From sequence record NC_041878.1: a DNA stretch of 64,000 bases; one strand, written 5' to 3'. The stretch's first letter is position 1. Every line of letters starts with the position of its first letter. Below, in pieces: positions 47,723 through 60,797 of this stretch. Below the pieces are notes generated by a model, which saw only the letters and a program-made list of their open reading frames with translations, did no database searches and was not told the DNA's origin. Position numbers and translations under genes: made by a program.

Positions 47723-47836
47723 GCAGTGATCGTCTAGCGGCCCAGGACACGAAAAGCGATTCTTGATTAAGAATCTTACGGCATCTATAACTTTCATTTC
47801 ACGAACGTAACGTAGGTTCGAATCCTACTCACTGCT
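47723..47836 (+). tRNA. tRNA-Glu(TTC) with 41-nt insert between nt 28 and 29
   Basis: Glu-type D arm GTCTAGCGGCCCAGGAC; CG[insert 47752-47792]TTC-ATTTCAC-GAACG. Confidence 0.65.
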
Positions 47837-49423: not shown

Positions 49424-49548
49424 GGCGAGTTAGCTCAGTGGTAGAGCACGTATGAAACCCAGGATTCCTGTACTTGAATCCCGCAGCAACTATACTCTCA
49501 AGCCTTTTAAGCTCGTGGTCATTGGTTCGAATCCAATACTCGCCACCA
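49424..49548 (+). tRNA. tRNA-Lys(TTT) with 50-nt insert between nt 28 and 29
   Basis: Removing 49451-49500 leaves a 75-nt cloverleaf: CGAGC-CTTTTAA-GCTCG, ACCA. Confidence 0.75.
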
Positions 49549-53566: not shown

Positions 53567-53687
53567 GGAATCTTACAGCAAAAATAATTAATTTTTGATG
53601 AAAACAAAACGATGGCGGTTCGAATCCCCACCCACGATTTTGCCTTATTTTAAGTGGGAGCATGGTGCTGGATAAACAAGAGATTCC
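53567..53687 (+). ncRNA. circularly permuted tRNA mimic (ACAGCAA family)
   Basis: GGAATC-TTACAGCAA, T arm, CCCAC/GTGGG closed acceptor, D-like hairpin, GATTCC. Confidence 0.7.
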
Positions 53688-53709
53688 AGATTTTAATTTA
53701 GAAAATTTT

Positions 53710-53738
53710 TGAAACGAATCAAAAATTTGTGGTATAAT
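53710..53738 (+). promoter_or_regulatory. class-B promoter
   Basis: TGAAAC-17-TATAAT. Confidence 0.8.
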
Positions 53739-53755
53739 AAACGTATTAGCAACAC

Positions 53756-53873
53756 GAAATCTTACAGCAAACAATATCTTATATTTTTTATGCGAAAAAA
53801 ACGATGTGGTTCGAATCCACAACAACCATGTTGCTATGTTGGTTGTGCATGGGGCTAGAAAACAAAAGATTTC
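53756..53873 (+). ncRNA. circularly permuted tRNA mimic (ACAGCAA family)
   Basis: GAAATCTT-ACAGCAA; TGTGG-TTCGAAT-CCACA; ACAACC/GGTTGT; AAGATTTC. Confidence 0.75.
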
Positions 53874-53907
53874 AGTTTTTTTAATTAAGACAAATAGGAC
53901 AACGGCA

Positions 53908-54054
53908 ATGACCGCAGAAGAAAATTTAGAAATCCTTCGTAAAATTCTTGACGGAATTCGTGATGGCGATTTGAATGAAGTAATGTCCGAAATAGGTTTT
54001 GAAGTATCCAAAAGTACAGATAAAAGTACTGAATGGATAAACAAAAACCAATAA
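53908..54054 (+). CDS. small hypothetical protein
   Basis: SD AGGA; MTAEENLEIL. Confidence 0.6.
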   Translation: MTAEENLEILRKILDGIRDGDLNEVMSEIGFEVSKSTDKSTEWINKNQ

Positions 54055-54060
54055 CAATCA

Positions 54061-54133
54061 GTTCCCATCGTCTAGTGGTAGGACTTTTGACTTTCTATCA
54101 AAAAACCTCGGTTCGAATCCGGGTGGGAACGCA
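54061..54133 (+). tRNA. tRNA-Glu(TTC)
   Basis: TTTGA-CTTTCTA-TCAAA, T arm. Confidence 0.9.
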
Positions 54134-54142
54134 AAGATATTT

Positions 54143-54231
54143 GGGGGAATAGTCCGTAGTTGGTAGCGGGGCAGACTGTAAATCTGCTACACGAAAGTGT
54201 TCGGGTGGTTCGACTCCATCTTCCCTCACCA
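54143..54231 (+). tRNA. tRNA-Tyr(GTA)
   Basis: GCAGA-CTGTAAA-TCTGC, long variable arm, CCA. Confidence 0.95.
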
Positions 54232-54232
54232 A

Positions 54233-54338
54233 AAGAATCGCACAGCAAACATCAATCTTATATATTTCATTTGGCGAAAACACCTTCGGTTCGATTCCGA
54301 TTTACCACTGGATGTGGGGATAGAAAAACACGATTCTT
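54233..54338 (+). ncRNA. ACAGCAA family RNA with T arm and short closed acceptor
   Basis: AAGAATCG-CACAGCAA...TCGG-TTCGATT-CCGA...CGATTCTT. Confidence 0.65.
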
Positions 54339-54376
54339 GTTTCTAATTTAGCGTGAGTTAACAGAATTTAGCACAC

Positions 54377-54533
54377 GGATTCAGACAGCAAACATAAAAT
54401 CTTAAAAATCATATCATATAACGAGATTGTCTACTCGGACGTAAAACTCCCTTCGTAGTCACTTGGCAACTAGGGATATATAAATTAGTTGTATCGAACA
54501 GTGCTAAGGTTTTTGTTCGATTACATTGAATCC
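54377..54533 (+). ncRNA. ACAGCAA family RNA with inverted closing helix
   Basis: GGATTCA-GACAGCAA...TGAATCC. Confidence 0.55.
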
Positions 54534-54563
54534 AGTAATCAAAGTACTTCATTGTACTTTTAT

Positions 54564-54654
54564 GGAAGATTGGCAGAGCGGTTTAATGCACATGTCTTGA
54601 AAACATGCGGGGGTTAATAGCCCTCCCTGGGTTCGAATCCCAGGTCTTCCACCA
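54564..54654 (+). tRNA. tRNA-Ser(TGA)
   Basis: CATGT-CTTGAAA-ACATG, long variable arm, CCA. Confidence 0.95.
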
Positions 54655-54660
54655 AATTTT

Positions 54661-54781
54661 GGGAAAGTAGCTCAGTTGGTAGAGCACGTATAGACGATTC
54701 TTGTAGTTGAATCTTACAGCAACCATACAATTGCATATATGAAAGCACGGTGTCATTGGTTCGAATCCAGTCTTTCCCACA
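54661..54781 (+). ncRNA. tRNA (Phe-like body) with 43-nt ACAGCAA insert and 10-nt loop
   Basis: GGGAAAG/CTTTCCC, canonical D and T arms; CG[54689-54731]TGC-ATATATGAAA-GCACG. Confidence 0.65.
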
Positions 54782-54845
54782 TAGAATCTAACAGCAAACC
54801 TTATTTTATCAAACCTAACCTTTGAAGCGAAAATAATAGATTCTA
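54782..54845 (+). ncRNA. minimal ACAGCAA family RNA
   Basis: TAGAATCTA-ACAGCAA...TAGATTCTA. Confidence 0.6.
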
Positions 54846-54870
54846 GTACTTTTAATTTGAGAAATACATA

Positions 54871-55272
54871 TTGGAAAATGATGAAATTGAAAATATGTTA
54901 GTTGACGCATTGCGAAAAATCGACACTTCATCATATGATTTTAAATCTTCCAAAGAGATTTCGAATTCAGAATTCGGTTCTGACGGCAAACGGCGATACT
55001 TGAAACTCTACTTTCAAAAAAGTTCAGGTGAAGGTATTATAGAATTCATTTATCATTCGATAAAAGATACGCTACGATTCAGAATTCAATATATTGATAA
55101 CTCTGATGAAGATGAAGATTTTGATGGAACTAGCATATCGTATAAGATACCAAGAACTGAGGAACAATATTTTCAGTACGATACAATTCAGGACAACATG
55201 TTTAGTTTAGAATTCTATATTTTACTAGAAAAAACAATGTCAGAATTGACACTACTATGGTATAGTAGATGA
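54871..55272 (+). CDS. hypothetical protein, EExxFQxxT family
   Basis: TEEQYFQYDTIQD. Confidence 0.7.
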   Translation: MENDEIENMLVDALRKIDTSSYDFKSSKEISNSEFGSDGKRRYLKLYFQKSSGEGIIEFIYHSIKDTLRFRIQYIDNSDEDEDFDGTSISYKIPRTEEQYFQYDTIQDNMFSLEFYILLEKTMSELTLLWYSR

Positions 55273-55295
55273 TTTAATCACCACAAGGAAATGAA

Positions 55296-55505
55296 ATGTT
55301 TTACGATTATTATTATAAAGTAGATGGTGCACTTCGTCGTCATACTTCTGCGGAAGAACTAAATGATGAACAAGTAAGCAACATCTTCGGTGCACAAAAA
55401 CGTGTAGTACTTCTTGAGCCAGTAGTGTTTGAACGCGAAGTTCAGGAAGATGAAAAAACTAAAACTGTTAAAGAACATGTAGGGTTTATCGGTTACGTAG
55501 AATAA
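55296..55505 (+). CDS. hypothetical protein
   Basis: SD AAGGA. Confidence 0.7.
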   Translation: MFYDYYYKVDGALRRHTSAEELNDEQVSNIFGAQKRVVLLEPVVFEREVQEDEKTKTVKEHVGFIGYVE

Positions 55506-55532
55506 TAAATGTAACGTACTGATAAATAAAAT

Positions 55533-55577
55533 AGAATCCATCCAGCATTGACCGGAAAATAATATATTGGATTCTTG
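55533..55577 (+). ncRNA. minimal ACAGCAA family variant
   Basis: AGAATCCA-TCCAGCA...TGGATTCT-TG. Confidence 0.45.
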
Positions 55578-55600
55578 TATTAATTGAGATGAGATATATT

Positions 55601-55825
55601 ATGGATAATCAACACAAACAAATTAAAGGATACCGAGATTTATCTCAGAAAGAGATTAATCAAATGAATGCATTAAAAGATATTGCTAATAAAGTTGGCG
55701 ATATTATTGAAGCACTACAAGATGACCCTGACGTTGATCAACGATGGCTTGCAATTGCGAAGACTGACCTTCAAAAAGGTTTCATGTCAGCAGTTCGAAG
55801 CGTTGCTAAACCGGACTCGTTTTAA
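55601..55825 (+). CDS. acb2: anti-CBASS cyclic-nucleotide sponge, Acb2 family
   Basis: MDNQHKQIKGYRDLSQKEI..MN...RWLAIAKTDLQKGFM...AKPDSF matches Acb2/Vs.4 as recalled. Confidence 0.85.
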   Translation: MDNQHKQIKGYRDLSQKEINQMNALKDIANKVGDIIEALQDDPDVDQRWLAIAKTDLQKGFMSAVRSVAKPDSF

Positions 55826-56223
55826 TGGACAAATATGATCGTTTAGATTCAATAGGTGAAGAACACCTGTTGAGCTTGATGAAAGTACAAAATCCAAGAA
55901 CAATGATAGGATTATCTGACCAGATAGTGTTTAATGAAAATGATTCATTCTCACTTATTACTGGAGAGGTAATCCTTTTTCATTTGGATGATGGTAGTAA
56001 CACATTTAGTGTAATGATACTACCAAACAATACATTCAAAGTACTGTACTATGTAACAGATGATGAAGATGATGGTAACTACATATTCACTTTCAACAAT
56101 GTTCCATATGATATTACTGAAGAATGGCATTTTCAAAAGAGTACACAAAAACGTTTACCATTCACTTATGAATTTCATGAGAAGATGAAAGAATTCGTTG
56201 AGTACTGTTTGAAGTTAATTTAA
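55825..56223 (+). CDS. hypothetical protein, EExxFQxxT family
   Basis: TEEWHFQKSTQK. Confidence 0.7.
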   Translation: MDKYDRLDSIGEEHLLSLMKVQNPRTMIGLSDQIVFNENDSFSLITGEVILFHLDDGSNTFSVMILPNNTFKVLYYVTDDEDDGNYIFTFNNVPYDITEEWHFQKSTQKRLPFTYEFHEKMKEFVEYCLKLI

Positions 56224-56226
56224 CCT

Positions 56227-56300
56227 AGCGGGTTAGTATAGAGGCATTACACTCGACTGATAATCGAGCGAAGGCGGATCGTTACCGCCACCCGCTACCA
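56227..56300 (+). tRNA. tRNA-Ile(GAT), atypical T loop
   Basis: CTCGA-CTGATAA-TCGAG; GGCGG-ATCGTTA-CCGCC; CCA. Confidence 0.9.
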
Positions 56301-56310
56301 ACGAATTTTC

Positions 56311-56448
56311 GGAATCTAACAGCAATTAAAAATGTTAACTAAAAAATAGCTGCCGCAAGGCTTGTAGGTTCAAGTCCTACAAATTATGTCTTCATGAATA
56401 ATGATGGTGAAAATGGTAAACACGGCTATTAACTAAACAATGGATTCC
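56311..56448 (+). ncRNA. circularly permuted class II (Leu-like) tRNA mimic, ACAGCAA family
   Basis: GGAATC-TAACAGCAA; ATAGC; CC-GCAA-GG variable arm; TGTAGG-TTCAAGT-CCTACA; D arm GGTGAAAATGGTAAACAC; GCTAT; GGATTCC. Confidence 0.8.
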
Positions 56449-56464
56449 TGTATTAATTAAACCA

Positions 56465-56560
56465 CAAGAGCATACGTACATTGATTCAATAATCTATAGG
56501 CTTTGTACGATGGGTGGCAGATGGATTATCATCTGAAGATAGTTACGCTGCGGCTATCAA
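56465..56560 (+). ncRNA. candidate three-hairpin RNA
   Basis: CGTACA/TGTACG, CAGATG/CATCTG, GATAG/CTATC hairpins in tandem. Confidence 0.3.
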
Positions 56561-56567
56561 CAAAATT

Positions 56568-56712
56568 TGGAATTTGCCAGCAATTAACTTATTCAACGCT
56601 GCGGGTCGCAGGTTCGAGTCCTGCCAGATATGAAATGATGCTTCGTAAGATAAATCAGATTAGTACTGTAGCTCAGTTGGGAGAGCAGCAGCCCACACAA
56701 AGATGAATTCCA
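56568..56712 (+). ncRNA. circularly permuted tRNA mimic, ACAGCAA family
   Basis: TGGAATT-TGCCAGCAA; GCTGC; GCAGG-TTCGAGT-CCTGC; CAG/CTG; TAGCTCAGTTGGGAGAGC; GCAGC; GAATTCCA. Confidence 0.85.
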
Positions 56713-56725
56713 GTATTAATTAAGT

Positions 56726-56902
56726 AGGGCGGTTGTAACCAGTACTAGAATAATACTTAGGAGAGTAGTGACTCAATAGTACTAGTAGCTTTTCAGAAAT
56801 GAGAGCTTTCACGAGGCCAGCACAGTTAAGATCACAACTTAATTGTACACGTAGAGTTGGCAAAAAACGGATAAGTAGTCATTCACTGGTTAGGGTGGCC
56901 TT
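56726..56902 (+). ncRNA. candidate nested multi-helix RNA
   Basis: TAACCAGT/ACTGGTTA, GTGACT/AGTCAT, GCCAGC/GTTGGC, ACAGTTAAG/CTTAATTGT. Confidence 0.5.
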
Positions 56903-56959
56903 ATAAACTATTAATTGAGACATAAATATTCCTATACGTTTTTTAGTAAGGATATAATT

Positions 56960-57559
56960 ATGGAAATGAAAAAACTAATGGAAGATATTTCTGCCATTAT
57001 GGAAGGACAATTACCTGACTATTACTATCATGGTAGTTCTTCACCAATCACAAATTTCAGTGATGAGTTTGTTGGTAGAGGTAATGATGAATACGGTCCT
57101 GGTATATATTTTAGCTCCGTTCCTAGTACTGCAATTGGTTATGCCAAAGATGGTGCAAATGGTGTAGTATATCAGTGTCAGATAACTTTAAGAAAAGTAC
57201 TCTCAAAGAAACAAAAAATCAATAAAGCAGTACTTTTAAAGTTAATGCAAGCAACACCAGATGATGAAGCATATACTAATTGGGATGAAAACCCCAATAG
57301 AGCATATCAAAATGCATTGAATTCATATATTGATGCAGAAACTAATATGTATGATGCTTTGATGGATGTATGGTACGATTGGTATCGTTATCATGGTACT
57401 GAATTTGTACGTAATCTTGTTAAATTAGGTTATGATGGTTATATCTACGAATTTCCAAATGGAGAAAGATTTGTAGTAGTATATAATCCAGCAAGTATTA
57501 AAGTTGTAAATAGTTATTCTCCAGAAGAAGCTCTACAAACACTAGTTAAATCTAAATAA
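56960..57559 (+). CDS. ADP-ribosyltransferase-fold protein (ART-PolyVal-like)
   Basis: YHGS....F...GPGIYFS....AIGYA...LGYDGYI...VVYNP..IK. Confidence 0.6.
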   Translation: MEMKKLMEDISAIMEGQLPDYYYHGSSSPITNFSDEFVGRGNDEYGPGIYFSSVPSTAIGYAKDGANGVVYQCQITLRKVLSKKQKINKAVLLKLMQATPDDEAYTNWDENPNRAYQNALNSYIDAETNMYDALMDVWYDWYRYHGTEFVRNLVKLGYDGYIYEFPNGERFVVVYNPASIKVVNSYSPEEALQTLVKSK

Positions 57560-57593
57560 TTATAGTACTAACTATATTAGAAGGATTTTTAAA

Positions 57594-57947
57594 GTGTTTA
57601 AGACTAGATTAAAAGTTGAATTAATCAACAACGAAGGAAAGAAGTGGAAACTTATTGAAGATTTAGTTTACGAAGATGAAATGCATGGAAGAATTACTGT
57701 TCCTGCTGGATTTGAAACTGACTTTGCAAGTGTACCTAGAATACCAGTTGTGTTTGAATTGGTAGGGGATCGTGGTCATGCAGCAGCAACACTTCACGAT
57801 TGGTTGTATCATAATGATAATCTATCACGTAAAGAAGTTGATAAGATTCTACTTCAGGCTTTAAGAGATACGAATGTGGGTAAAGTTCGTTCATATTTGA
57901 TGTACTTTGGTGTACGTGGATTTGGATGGTTATTCTACATGAAATAA
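57594..57947 (+). CDS. DUF1353 family protein
   Basis: ITVPAGFETDFASVPR...AATLHDWLY. Confidence 0.85.
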   Translation: MFKTRLKVELINNEGKKWKLIEDLVYEDEMHGRITVPAGFETDFASVPRIPVVFELVGDRGHAAATLHDWLYHNDNLSRKEVDKILLQALRDTNVGKVRSYLMYFGVRGFGWLFYMK

Positions 57948-57952
57948 GAATT

Positions 57953-58210
57953 TGGAATTTAACAGCACAAAACATTTTGTCGCAGGTTCGAATCCTGCCA
58001 GAAATATTTAATTTGTAGATTACTTTATTATCATTTTCTAGATATTGATAATATTGAACATGTAACACCGTGGAGGTAACAGCTTTAGCGGGTTGTGAGA
58101 TAAACGCAGGGGTTACAATATATGTTGCAACGACCGATATGGCTAATCATAACAAATTAACTTAGTTCTGTAGCTTAGCTGGTAGAGCAAATGATAACGA
58201 ATAAATTCCA
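57953..58210 (+). ncRNA. circularly permuted tRNA mimic with 162-nt acceptor-stem insert
   Basis: TGGAATTT-AACAGCA; CATTT; GCAGG-TTCGAAT-CCTGC; CAGAA..TTCTG; TAGCTTAGCTGGTAGAGC; AAATG; AAATTCCA. Confidence 0.8.
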
Positions 58211-58680: not shown

Positions 58681-58687
58681 TAAAATT

Positions 58688-58753
58688 TGGAATCTAGCAG
58701 CAACCATAAAATGAAATCAACTGTTAATTGAAAACCTCAAAAAATGGATTCCA
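58688..58753 (+). ncRNA. minimal ACAGCAA family RNA carrying Asn-type anticodon hairpin
   Basis: TGGAATC-TAGCAGCAA...TCAA-CTGTTAA-TTGA...GGATTCCA. Confidence 0.65.
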
Positions 58754-58760
58754 GCCTTTT

Positions 58761-59072
58761 ATGAATATAAAAGAAATTGTAGAACAAATTGAAAGTACTA
58801 TGAAAACTTCAGGTGATAATTACATGAAGGAGTTAATACTAACAAATAGGAAGAAATTACGTAACACATTCTGTGATGAATGTAATTCTTACTCCGTGTT
58901 CATGATAGTACATGATGAATTATGGAACATCATAAGTGACGGTAACTTAGATATTTTCTTATGTCCTAAATGTATGGAAAATCGATTAGGTAGAAAAATA
59001 GAAATTGCTGATTTAAAAATTTGTAATGTAAATTACCCTTACTTTTTAGCATTACAAATGATTGAAAAATAA
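58761..59072 (+). CDS. hypothetical protein with CxxC motifs
   Basis: CDEC...LCPKCMENRLGR. Confidence 0.65.
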   Translation: MNIKEIVEQIESTMKTSGDNYMKELILTNRKKLRNTFCDECNSYSVFMIVHDELWNIISDGNLDIFLCPKCMENRLGRKIEIADLKICNVNYPYFLALQMIEK

Positions 59073-59073
59073 A

Positions 59074-59102
59074 TGAAACGCCACAAGAAATTGTGGTATA
59101 AT
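59074..59102 (+). promoter_or_regulatory. class-B promoter
   Basis: TGAAAC-17-TATAAT before tRNA-Asn. Confidence 0.8.
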
Positions 59103-59122
59103 ATAAGTAAGAAAAACAACTT

Positions 59123-59196
59123 GACTGTATAGCTCAGAGGCAGAGCGGCTCCCTGTTAAGGAGAAGGTCGGGATTTCGAAATTCCCTACGGTCGCA
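59123..59196 (+). tRNA. tRNA-Asn(GTT)
   Basis: CTCC-CTGTTAA-GGAG; acceptor GACTGTA/TACGGTC. Confidence 0.9.
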
Positions 59197-59320
59197 AAGA
59201 ATCAAATTCACCAGGCGTACTATGGTGCAATACGGATAGCATGTTATTCTATAAGATTGGAATAGAATACGTATTAGAACCTTGTAAAGTTCTTCTGTAA
59301 ACTCAATTTGATACCTTCTT

Positions 59321-59387
59321 TAGAATCTAACAGCAAACACATTTAAACATATATTTTTGGGATATAAAACGTTAAAAACGGATTCTA
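59321..59387 (+). ncRNA. minimal ACAGCAA family RNA
   Basis: TAGAATC-TAACAGCAA...TATAT-TTTTGGG-ATATA...GATTCTA. Confidence 0.6.
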
Positions 59388-59417
59388 GTCTTATTAAAAG
59401 CAATCGAGAATATTTAC

Positions 59418-59648
59418 ATGAAAACGATCAAAATGTATTTGCTACAACGTCCAGGCCGCGATGATGATTATATCTCAGTACTAGATGATAAAATCAACGT
59501 TCAGTCAAGTCTATTAAAACATATGTGGAATGACCCAAGTAAGATCAATTTCAAAATTCTGACATTCCCTTATACATTAGAAACCTATTATGGTGATTCT
59601 AATGTTCTGGAAGATGCAGTACTATTATGGGAACATAATATAGATTAA
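59418..59648 (+). CDS. hypothetical protein
   Basis: Co-oriented ORF. Confidence 0.65.
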   Translation: MKTIKMYLLQRPGRDDDYISVLDDKINVQSSLLKHMWNDPSKINFKILTFPYTLETYYGDSNVLEDAVLLWEHNID

Positions 59649-59653
59649 AAATT

Positions 59654-59709
59654 TAGAATCTAACAGCAATTAAAACTCATTTGGATAATATGAAAACCGA
59701 TAGATTCTA
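59654..59709 (+). ncRNA. minimal ACAGCAA family RNA (near-identical to 60718-60772)
   Basis: TAGAATCTAACAGCAATTAAAACTCATTTGGATAATATGAAAA...TAGATTCTA. Confidence 0.65.
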
Positions 59710-59715
59710 GTCTTT

Positions 59716-59790
59716 AGGCGTATAGTGTAATTGGTTAGCACACCAGGTTTTGATCCTGGTAATCGAGGTTCAAGTCCTTGTATGCCTGCA
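59716..59790 (+). tRNA. tRNA-Gln(TTG)
   Basis: CCAGG-TTTTGAT-CCTGG; CGAGG-TTCAAGT-CCTTG. Confidence 0.9.
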
Positions 59791-59809
59791 AAATAAAATA
59801 AGGCAAATT

Positions 59810-60058
59810 ATGTTCGAACAAGAATACAGCAATTCAACTCCAGTACAAGATATGCTTGCATATTTTGTAACCGGTACAGTACGAATTAGCGATTATATGG
59901 TTGAAGAACCAAGAAGATATAATAAGTCACACATTGTTTATGCTCTTGATGAAAATGACGCAGAACGTAAGTTCATAGAACATTATGAAAAGAAAACTTC
60001 AGAGTATGAACGTTACTACAGTGTAAGTAATGTAGAAGTTTCAGAAACCTTAATTTAA
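59810..60058 (+). CDS. hypothetical protein
   Basis: Start moved past tRNA to MFEQE. Confidence 0.7.
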   Translation: MFEQEYSNSTPVQDMLAYFVTGTVRISDYMVEEPRRYNKSHIVYALDENDAERKFIEHYEKKTSEYERYYSVSNVEVSETLI

Positions 60059-60194
60059 AAAATTTCATTTCCTTGTGAAACAAGCTCGCATGATTCCCCT
60101 AGCTTGTAAAATTGTATGATGGGAACCGCGTTGCACCTGTACAGGTCAGATTGTAAAGATCAAGTATGTACAGTACTGAGAGCGGCAGTACACT

Positions 60195-60269
60195 GCATCC
60201 ATCGTATATCGGCTATTATAATTGGCTTCCACCCAATAGAACGGAGTTCGACCCTCCGTGGATGCTCGA
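60195..60269 (+). tRNA. tRNA-Gly(TCC)
   Basis: ATTGG-CTTCCAC-CCAAT; U73. Confidence 0.9.
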
Positions 60270-60383
60270 AGATTAACAAACAATAAGGTAAATTATATGC
60301 TATAGAATCCTAGTACTGGTCCTCCTGATAAGTTTAATTCAGAACAAACTACTAAATTAAACAATATCAAAAAGGAACATATT

Positions 60384-60710
60384 ATGTTAAACAAAGAACA
60401 ATACATTACTGTAAAAGCAACCTGGAAAAAAGTAAAAGAGCACACTGTACACGAACACATTATCTATAATGTACTTCGGGGTAAAGAGGCTGATGAAGGG
60501 TTTGTAGCTTTAACTGATTGGGGTCGTTTGAATGCAAGTGATAACAATCCGTGGTTCAACTATGATAACGCAGTACGCGAAATTCACTATCAGTTGAATG
60601 CTAAACGTTATAACTATGAAGGTACAGTAAAACATTATTCCGATGTTTTCGGCATTGATTTAACACCTGAACTAATTGCAGAAGTACTACAAGCAATTAA
60701 GTTCAAGTAA
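60384..60710 (+). CDS. conserved phage hypothetical protein
   Basis: SD AAGGA; HIIYNVLRGK. Confidence 0.75.
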   Translation: MLNKEQYITVKATWKKVKEHTVHEHIIYNVLRGKEADEGFVALTDWGRLNASDNNPWFNYDNAVREIHYQLNAKRYNYEGTVKHYSDVFGIDLTPELIAEVLQAIKFK

Positions 60711-60717
60711 CAGAATT

Positions 60718-60772
60718 TAGAATCTAACAGCAATTAAACTCATTTGGATAATATGAAAAACAATAGATTCTA
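60718..60772 (+). ncRNA. minimal ACAGCAA family RNA
   Basis: Direct repeat of 59654-59709. Confidence 0.65.
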
Positions 60773-60797
60773 GTACTTTTTTAGCTAAGAGACAAAT

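Follow-up and report, generated by a model that had tools for sequence, protein, structure and literature searches.

Short repeated elements that combine one conserved handle with exchangeable interiors lie between the genes of the long tRNA-gene region of Pectobacterium phage vB_PcaM_CBB (CBB), a 378-kb Rak2-like jumbo phage. The stretch of DNA analysed here (the window) comprises 64,000 nucleotides of record NC_041878.1 and corresponds to bases 248001-312000 of the phage genome. The interval in question, 58688-60772 of the window, carries the elements U10 to U13, which represent the shortest form of the family and are called minimal modules. We propose that the minimal modules are free-standing, Y-RNA-like small RNAs of the phage, which dock to the Ro60-like protein gp183 and whose variable part, the cargo, engages a factor recognising anticodon loops, likely a host anticodon nuclease. 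The probability of this reading is estimated at roughly 50 %. A common handle combined with anticodon display is supported by the comparisons described below, and by analogy with known nuclease systems the modules may serve as decoys.

The elements of the interval and the tRNA gene relevant for comparison are:

58690..58755, + strand: minimal module U10, with helix 58690-58696/58745-58751, GCAGCAA at 58697-58703 and tail CAGC; 64.4 bits
58717-58731, + strand: cargo hairpin of U10, TCAA-CTGTTAA-TTGA, a copy of the Asn GUU anticodon loop on a 4-bp stem
59123..59195, + strand: genuine tRNA-Asn(GUU), with promoter at 59073-59102 and anticodon loop at 59153-59159
59323..59389, + strand: minimal module U11, with helix 59323-59329/59379-59385 and ACAGCAA at 59330-59336; 61.1 bits
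59350-59366, + strand: cargo hairpin of U11, TATAT-TTTTGGG-ATATA, ambiguous, resembling Gln UUG
59656..59711, + strand: minimal module U12, directly upstream of tRNA-Gln (59716); 70.4 bits
59677-59693, + strand: cargo hairpin of U12, TCAT-TTGGATAAT-ATGA, not anticodon-like
60720..60774, + strand: minimal module U13, between gp518 and gp517, a near-twin of U12 with the same hairpin at 60740-60756; 74.5 bits

The shared handle

The module is defined by a covarying 7-bp terminal helix, the single-stranded motif NACAGCAA and a 3' YNGU tail. In CBB the handle is read in the order 5' AAUUUR flank, GAAUCUA strand, ACAGCAA, interior, complementary UAGAUUC and YWGU tail. The tails are C-UAGU, C-CAGC or C-UUGU in the CBB DNA, and C-UGU in the copies from distant phages and metagenome-assembled genomes (MAGs). 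From helix to tail the minimal modules are 45-67 nt long. Based on a covariance model and inspection by eye, CBB has at least 13 free copies (6 minimal and 7 larger) and another 3 inside tRNA genes. The 14-mer GAATCTARCAGCAA, with up to 2 mismatches allowed, has 14 matches in the window compared to 1.16 expected, a number not reached by any of 100 shuffles.

Covariance model R1 was built from 18 minimal copies of four phages, and its matches in the 378-kb genome were confined to the tRNA region at 301.5-308.8 kb, all on the + strand. Ten related jumbo phages (GAP32, BF, pEa_SNUABM_50, fHe-Yen9-03, fHe-Yen9-04, Kaldavass, XbC2, fENko-Kae01, Munch and a 371-kb IMG/VR contig) had 3-12 R1 matches each (E<=0.1), on the gene strand and nearly all within one 5-12-kb stretch of tRNA genes. 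A scan of IMG/VR with the 14-mer, in which most matches were chance ones, served only to choose the jumbo-phage relatives. Across 68 distinct sequences the terminal helix was 97.5 % paired, with compensatory double changes at 4 of the 7 pairs in an alignment that had been fitted to the model. All shuffles and all slid registers scored below the true register, and the first pair of the helix was G-C in 65 of the 68 sequences. When Rfam was searched at the gathering score and at E<=1, nothing was found on the minimal modules, and no ribozyme or riboswitch family was matched.

Cargo hairpins and anticodon loops

The interiors were assessed using 155 distinct minimal-module interiors from 91 sources, i.e. 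11 jumbo phages (CBB included) and 80 viral loci encoding DUF2828 proteins, the family to which gp183 belongs. The best hairpin of each interior was taken, and 200 control sets were made of shuffled interiors or of random genomic segments of equal length. Seven-nucleotide loops were found 34 times, compared to 12.9 in the shuffled and 14.7 in the random genomic controls. For loops of the form Y-U-NNN-R the count was 18 against 0.95 and 1.7 (control maximum 7), and for C-U-NNN-A-A it was 12 against 0.18 and 0.38 (control maximum 3). The composition of the loops was that of anticodon loops, with C32 in 61 %, U33 in 75 %, U36 in 64 %, A37 in 71 % and A38 in 68 %. The earlier note on this DNA had made its proposal depend on enrichment of canonical loops across homologs, and such enrichment is present.

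Several whole cargo loops were equal to real tRNA loops, namely CUGUUAA (Asn), CUUUUAA (Lys), CUGUAAA (Tyr), CUGCUAA (Ser GCU) and CUCAUAA (Met), and in the relatives and distant loci Lys, Asp, Tyr and Ser cargo loops were identical to loops of real phage tRNAs. The anticodon identities found in the cargo were Lys UUU and CUU, Asn GUU, Thr UGU, Tyr GUA, Asp GUC, Ser GCU and Met CAU. The loop CUGUCAC (Asp, with its characteristic C38) was present on three different stems in Clostridia MAGs. Every CU-NNN-AA cargo hairpin listed was closed by an A31-U39 pair, so that those bearing U36 carry the sequence U36-A-A-U39.

In the interval itself the picture is more restricted. The sequences quoted in the earlier note were all present at the places given, and the U10 loop was indeed identical to that of the real tRNA-Asn. 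Ten copies from 9 phages share an 18-nt block of U10, including UCAA-CUGUUAA-UUGA, without any change, whereas substitutions and indels are found in the linkers on either side, and U10 is a solid copy of the Asn anticodon loop. The anticodon-type pattern (Y32, U33 and R37 in a 7-nt loop closed by some 5 bp) is seen in U10 and at the family level, and is absent from U12, U13 and U5 (a further minimal module, see below). U11 also has such a loop, but its register is not kept in the single orthologue found, that of GAP32 (TATTT-TTTGGGT-AAATA). As the U11 stem covaries and the loop register moves, its identity as Gln UUG is doubtful. The expectation of a panel of anticodon-like hairpins was thus borne out for the family, but within the flagged interval it did not extend beyond the Asn hairpin, which had already been singled out as the only clear canonical loop.

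The loops of U12 and U13 are not anticodon loops. As noted earlier, the two modules are near-identical copies about 1 kb apart; with flanks included (59650-59717 and 60714-60780) 63 of 69 positions are identical. Their cargo represents the commonest group in this clade, with loops YGGAUAU, UUGGAUAAU or UCGAUUAU that have several invariant bases and no U33. The stem of this type covaries, being UCAU/AUGA in most copies and UUCU/AGAA in GAP32, in the IMG/VR contig c371 and in Kaldavass; this covariation was judged by eye, since gap placement by MAFFT breaks the register. In a Cellvibrionaceae MAG (L240:2854-2902), a module 100 nt upstream from a DUF2828 gene combines the 9-nt loop UUGGAUAAU with another stem, TTGC/GCAA. 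A second reading of this MAG module is that of a near-consensus promoter (TTGACT, 17 nt, GATAAT).

The Ro60-like protein gp183

The product of gp183 (504 aa, genome positions 102737-104251) is annotated as 'RNA-binding protein' and matches the Pfam families DUF2828 and DUF7788 (vWA-like), while no match to Pfam TROVE was found in CBB. Its AlphaFold (AF2) model, made with 35 homologues, had a predicted local distance difference test score (pLDDT) of 87.5 and a predicted template modelling score (pTM) of 0.85. When the model was compared to the PDB with Foldseek, the best 12 matches were all full-length Ro60/TROVE structures (E-values 5e-10 to 3.5e-5), among them Xenopus and human Ro60, Deinococcus Rsr and the Ro60 of Thermus phage phiLo. 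As predicted from the model, gp183 folds as Ro60. The DUF2828 branch contains more than 6,600 protein clusters, and an atlas look-up returned viral and bacterial clusters only.

The linkage between protein and RNA was studied with a strict descriptor (7 of 7 pairs, CAGCA[AC] 1-3 nt past the stem and a GU tail). In 69 IMG/VR loci with DUF2828 proteins of 42-47 % identity, 38 modules were found on the gene strand and 6 on the opposite strand, compared to 2.0 in shuffled sequences, many of them not more than 0.5 kb upstream of the DUF2828 gene. The stems in these loci were unrelated in sequence, e.g. GGAUAGU/GCUAUCC, GGAUGCU/AGCAUCC and GGUUAGU/ACUAACC. In 80 bacterial and MAG loci (30-47 % identity) the corresponding numbers were 61, 20 and 13. 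The pairing of the DUF2828 gene with the RNA is real and ancient, and gp183 presumably binds the modules. The suggestion of a common protein handle is supported by the conservation and covariation of the handle, the Ro60-fold protein encoded by CBB and the modules beside DUF2828 genes in distant genomes.

An Rnl2-type RNA ligase, gp181, is a neighbour of gp183 (genome 100739-104251), with only an HNH endonuclease gene, apparently inserted, between them. This neighbourhood recalls the bacterial rsr-rtcB repair operons.

Position of the modules between genes

The flagged interval is part of a region in which ARAGORN called 21 tRNAs and where all genes are on the + strand. The minimal modules occupy entire gaps between same-strand genes and end 6-35 nt before a start codon or at a tRNA gene. 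None of them has a convincing promoter of its own, and their flanks are A/U-rich and single-stranded (AAUUU 5', YAGUNUUU 3'), which we take to resemble RNase E sites. It is conceivable, if rather unlikely, that the modules are cis-acting intercistronic structures of long polycistronic transcripts, with a role in RNase processing, in protecting the ends of mRNA or of tRNA precursors or in control of translation of the next gene; in one variant of this explanation the anticodon-like hairpin would be an operator, as in the thrS leader. Against this, the larger siblings U1 and U2 follow dedicated strong sigma-70-like promoters (families D2 and D3) and have no downstream open reading frame (ORF). 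In distant phages the DUF2828 gene has the modules upstream of it, and at least one module has its own sigma-70 promoter; the same design gives free RNAs of about 60 nt in Dictyostelium (PMC7919456).

In relatives, contigs from metagenomes and metatranscriptomes have their joints precisely at the ends of modules (58760>59066, 59115>59323, 59197>59655 and 59310 back to 58685), with the intervening ORFs and tRNAs deleted or reordered (window 58685-59655), and the repeats therefore also serve as points of recombination or gene shuffling. Such joints would fit a role at the DNA level, i.e. intergenic recombination cassettes resembling PeSL, where modules of the U11-U13 type might also act as weak sigma-70 promoters of the tRNA or ORF that follows. 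Candidate promoters (CTAACA-N17/18-GATAAT or TATATT) with 9-of-12 matches were indeed found inside U11, U12 and U13 (59327-59355, 59660-59689 and 60724-60752), the -35-like part being the handle itself, and several phages have group-D modules immediately ahead of their genes for tRNA-Gln, tRNA-Ile and tRNA-Leu. We nevertheless regard this explanation as improbable. The sigma-70-like matches in the region did not exceed those in shuffled sequences (15 compared to 11.1, standard deviation 2.7), and the -10-like hexamer was poor in several orthologues. The compensatory changes that preserve pairing in the terminal helix and the inner hairpin indicate selection on RNA structure, and recombination repeats do not explain the stems of unrelated sequence beside distant DUF2828 genes.

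Two non-coding stretches of the region, 59196-59320 beside tRNA-Asn and 60060-60195 beside tRNA-Gly, are unannotated. The latter is retained in contigs of relatives in which the tRNA-Gly is replaced by about 154 other bases.

Other modules and module-bearing tRNA genes

The remaining copies in the window are found upstream of the interval:

47723-47836: tRNA-Glu(UUC) with module, of the same build as the tRNA-Lys gene at 49424
49424..49545, + strand: tRNA-Lys(UUU) with module, a forward-topology insert in the 5' strand of the anticodon stem
within 53568..58210, + strand: larger siblings U1, U2, U4, U7, U8 and U9, in which the handle encloses a circularly permuted tRNA-like body
54235..54340, + strand: U3, an intermediate form with handle, TTTC-ATTTGGC-GAAA and then a T-arm-like hairpin, GG-TTCGATT-CC
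54661-54779: long tRNA with module, annotated 'tRNA-Ser(AGA)'
54784..54847, + strand: minimal module U5, directly after the long tRNA, with hairpin TCAAA-CCTAACC-TTTGA at 54809-54825
55534..55578, + strand: minimal module U6, which lacks a cargo hairpin and has CCAGCAT as variant of the handle; 27 bits

The permuted body of the larger siblings has the order T arm, closed acceptor stem, D arm. U3, cited earlier at 54233 as a minimal element, does not belong to that class because of its additional T-arm-like hairpin. In the relatives of U5 the hairpin is UCAAA-CUUUUAA/CUUUUAC-UUUGA (Lys UUU), whereas the CBB loop is scrambled to CCUAACC. Compared to GAP32 (CTTTTAC; L009:6848-6864), 4 of the 7 loop bases differ and only 3 of 69 elsewhere in the module, which indicates either rapid turnover of the loop or loss of function in CBB.

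In the tRNA-Lys gene at 49424 the true anticodon arm, AGC-CUUUUAA-GCU, comes after CAGCAA and an 11-nt linker of the CYAUA type. The hairpin of the minimal modules, likewise preceded by a linker of this kind, corresponds in place to the anticodon arm of the module-bearing tRNA genes, and is therefore positionally homologous to it. The anticodon position of the long tRNA at 54661-54779 is a 3-bp stem with a 10-nt loop, TGC-ATATATGAAA-GCA, and judged by this sequence the annotated 'tRNA-Ser(AGA)' probably cannot decode. Canonical tRNA introns were rejected as an explanation of the long tRNAs, since the insert is located between nt 28 and 29 and not after nt 37. Functional tRNA genes that are split or permuted and contain introns with ORFs were likewise rejected, as in each unit both halves of the handle lie within 45-270 nt and the minimal units are without any tRNA arm. 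In GAP32 the anticodon arm of tRNA-Lys (L009:18041-18116) contains U36-A-A-A-C-C, the variant which makes the tRNA-Lys of phage T5 resistant to the nuclease AriB of the PARIS system (PMC12409363).

The three topologies (tRNA insert, permuted tRNA-like form and minimal form) have the handle and a CYATA linker in common. This could be explained if the minimal modules were functionless, decaying remnants of module-bearing tRNA genes with inherited anticodon-like loops, and the scrambled Lys-like loop of CBB and the lack of cargo in U6 would fit such decay. We find this explanation very improbable, as the Asn hairpin and the handle are invariant across 9 phages despite varying linkers and flanks, and as it is minimal modules that accompany the DUF2828 genes of distant phages. 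The same loop occurs on different stems (Asp CUGUCAC three times), which argues for selection on the loop.

Proposed function and alternatives

The handle, with its terminal helix, single-stranded motif and YNGU tail, is most likely the docking site for the ring protein gp183. The variable interior would be the cargo, which in the minimal modules is one short A/U-rich hairpin and in many family members a copy of a tRNA anticodon stem-loop; in CBB the copies would be Asn GUU, a decayed Lys and a doubtful Gln. In the resulting RNA-protein particle the anticodon loop could be offered to a factor recognising such loops, for which anticodon nucleases of the host (of the PrrC, RloC, PARIS-AriB or colicin-E5 kind) are the most likely candidates. 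The module RNA would in that case serve as bait or decoy, with a possible coupling to the RNA ligase gp181. We infer transcription and excision of the modules, their binding by protein and the identity of the factor engaged, and favour the nuclease bait or decoy as the leading model, with recruitment of tRNA enzymes as the main alternative.

PrrC targets tRNA-Lys, the retron-associated PtuAB effector tRNA-Tyr and colicin E5 tRNAs with GUN anticodons. The anticodon identities of the cargo seem to overlap with the tRNAs attacked by known anti-phage and toxin nucleases. The AriB nuclease of PARIS cleaves tRNA-Lys with anticodon UUU, tRNA-Thr with UGU and tRNA-Asn with GUU via U36-A-A-U39, and the change U39A abolishes cleavage (PMC12409363). 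The Asn cargo hairpin keeps this U36-A-A-U39 signature, which is circumstantial evidence for a decoy. In the anticodon arm of the real tRNA-Asn of CBB, GCTCC-CTGTTAA-GGAGA (59148-59164), base 39 is G and not U, and the real tRNA-Asn of related phages has G or C at position 39 in all but one (31-39 pair of G-C type).

With the same architecture and partner, the cargo might instead recruit or titrate tRNA-handling enzymes, the particle being a platform for tRNA quality control or repair like Rsr/YrlA/RtcB. Candidates would be queuine tRNA-guanine transglycosylase (GUN loops), t6A and other modification enzymes (U36-A37-A38 loops), synthetases or the RNA ligase encoded nearby. Such a function agrees with the Ro60 fold of gp183 and the adjacent ligase, as well as with the T4 Rnl1-type ligase found near one distant DUF2828 gene, and the anticodons in the cargo are mostly ones for ANN codons or of the GUN type. 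Enzymes acting on tRNA accept bacterial YrlA RNAs as substrates (PMC4201824), and Iyer et al. read the TROVE proteins of jumbo phages as RNA-repair platforms with a tRNA-like partner (PMC7824862). However, adjacency of a ligase is limited to this clade and isolated cases, other ligase families being seen only anecdotally, and RtcB is absent from CBB. We consider enzyme recruitment possible but do not expect it.

Several observations weigh against the proposed docking of the modules to gp183 and their action on a nuclease. The folding free energies of the modules were not significant (z-scores -0.3 to -1.65), and the support for the structure is therefore comparative; the weak A/U-rich folds would probably need a protein. 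The Asn stem of U10, with its 4 A/U-rich pairs, was not predicted by RNAfold and is thermodynamically marginal. In CBB only 1 of the 6 minimal modules has a canonical anticodon loop, and the commonest cargo type (U12 and U13) is without U33. The gp183 gene is located 200 kb from the modules in CBB, which is why the RNA linkage was tested in other genomes. A ligase beside the DUF2828 gene is not a general feature, since tblastn with the CBB ligase found it in 1 of 69 distant viral loci and in none of 80 bacterial loci. One search for sequencing runs yielded only metagenome or metatranscriptome contigs of relatives, of small share, and these showed rearrangement joints but no sign of transcription. 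Finally, AriB needs contacts outside the anticodon arm (PMC12409363), and a bare stem-loop may therefore be a poor decoy.

Significance

Ro60/Y-RNA particles, and the mimicry of tRNA bodies by bacterial Y RNAs, are already known. The literature on DUF2828, on Ro60 together with phage and anticodon, and on the motif yielded no description of these phage RNAs, and we found no published account of partner RNAs of the DUF2828 branch, of the CAGCAA handle in phages or of single anticodon loops with a defined identity being displayed on a scaffold. The copies of anticodon loops in CBB and in many unrelated phages point to an undescribed RNA-protein tool for conflicts directed at tRNAs. Provided that the modules are indeed small RNAs, they would provide a compact system of one protein and RNAs of about 60 nt with a swappable 15-nt cargo, and could show how phages handle tRNA-targeting immunity (PrrC, PARIS and effectors of the retron type). 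They would also link the 'intron-containing' and pseudo-tRNAs of jumbo phages, the tRNA mimicry of Y RNAs and the orphan Class I RNAs of Dictyostelium.

More speculatively, DUF2828/DUF7788 proteins and RNAs with the helix and CAGCAA could form a widespread, undescribed Ro60-like ribonucleoprotein class in phages, many bacteria and, via the Class I RNAs, social amoebae, with exchangeable copies of anticodon loops; in phages the particle would be a bait which senses or absorbs the anticodon nucleases of the host and passes damage on to a ligase encoded nearby. Such a general class is a tentative idea that we think more likely to fail than to hold. If true, the orphan Class I RNAs would gain a candidate partner and a mechanism.

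Comparison with known systems

The PeSLs of T4-type phages, mobile regulatory cassettes which Arbiol et al. reportedly found in 2010 to contain an early promoter, resemble the modules as repeated intergenic stem-loop cassettes at which the genomes of relatives are shuffled. Unlike PeSLs, the CBB modules have no significant promoter; their helix covaries, and their linkage to a protein family extends over distant genomes.

Repair by Pnk and Rnl1 of phage T4 counters PrrC. This repair and the evasion of PARIS by tRNA-Lys, tRNA-Thr and tRNA-Asn of phage T5 (PMC11464382, PMC12409363) share with the CBB system the tRNA species concerned (Lys UUU, Asn GUU, Thr UGU and Tyr), a phage tRNA cluster and ligase genes. 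Evasion in T5 and T4 replaces or repairs whole tRNAs, whereas the CBB modules show an isolated anticodon stem-loop on a scaffold that is not a tRNA and therefore cannot decode.

The Class I RNAs of Dictyostelium are about 60 nt long, with a covarying terminal stem of 6-7 bp that starts with G, and have a mature 3' end of C-UGU (Aspegren 2004; Kjellin 2021, PMC7919456); they have been searched for with the pattern GTTGRCCTTACAGCAA ... GTCAACTG (PMC5054030). Beside the 5' stem strand they carry the 11-nt motif CCUUACAGCAA, in which T3, C6, C9, A10 and A11 are near-invariant (PMC7919456, PMC5054030), and all five of these positions are matched by UCUAACAGCAA or UCUUACAGCAA in CBB handles. The design of the phage modules is nearly identical, including (C)YUUACAGCAA next to the 5' strand and a variable interior. 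At the DNA level, copies from distant phages end exactly in the C-UGU of Class I, while the Rak2-like copies end in C-YWGU, one base longer. The Class I RNAs differ in that their genes are nuclear, belong to eukaryotes and carry a DUSE promoter some 60 nt upstream, and reports of them are confined to Dictyostelia; the modules are in a phage genome, whose promoters are of the sigma-70 type where any are seen. The known binder of Class I RNAs is the RNA recognition motif (RRM) protein Rnp1A/CIBP, with neither a Ro60-like partner nor anticodon-like cargo reported.

The YrlA Y RNA resembles the modules in being a small RNA whose 5' and 3' ends form a helix bearing the protein site and whose second module mimics a tRNA. 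Both have a ring-plus-vWA partner of the Ro60 fold (for the modules the candidate gp183, whose fold is predicted) and a link to RNA-repair genes, and the larger CBB siblings have the same permuted order of T arm, closed acceptor and D arm as YrlA. This domain is present in U1, U2 and U7-U9 and absent from U5, U6 and U10-U13. The partner of YrlA (RF02553) belongs to Pfam TROVE and the candidate partner in CBB to DUF2828/DUF7788, and the many RNA genes of CBB are, unlike YrlA, 200 kb from the protein gene. The Rsr-binding motif close to YrlA's 5' end is GNCGAAN0-1G (Chen et al. 2014, PMC4201824), in place of the helix, NACAGCAA and YNGU of the CBB handle, and GNCGAA is absent from the handle sequence GAAUCUA-ACAGCAA. 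With RF02553 (gathering score 69 bits) no match was obtained on the minimal modules, and the best one in the window, 31.4 bits, covered only the tRNA-like core of sibling U8 (56600-56690). The minimal modules thus fall outside the YrlA family; yet, by analogy, we propose that they work like Y RNAs, carrying only an anticodon-type hairpin, the one part of a tRNA that is missing from YrlA.

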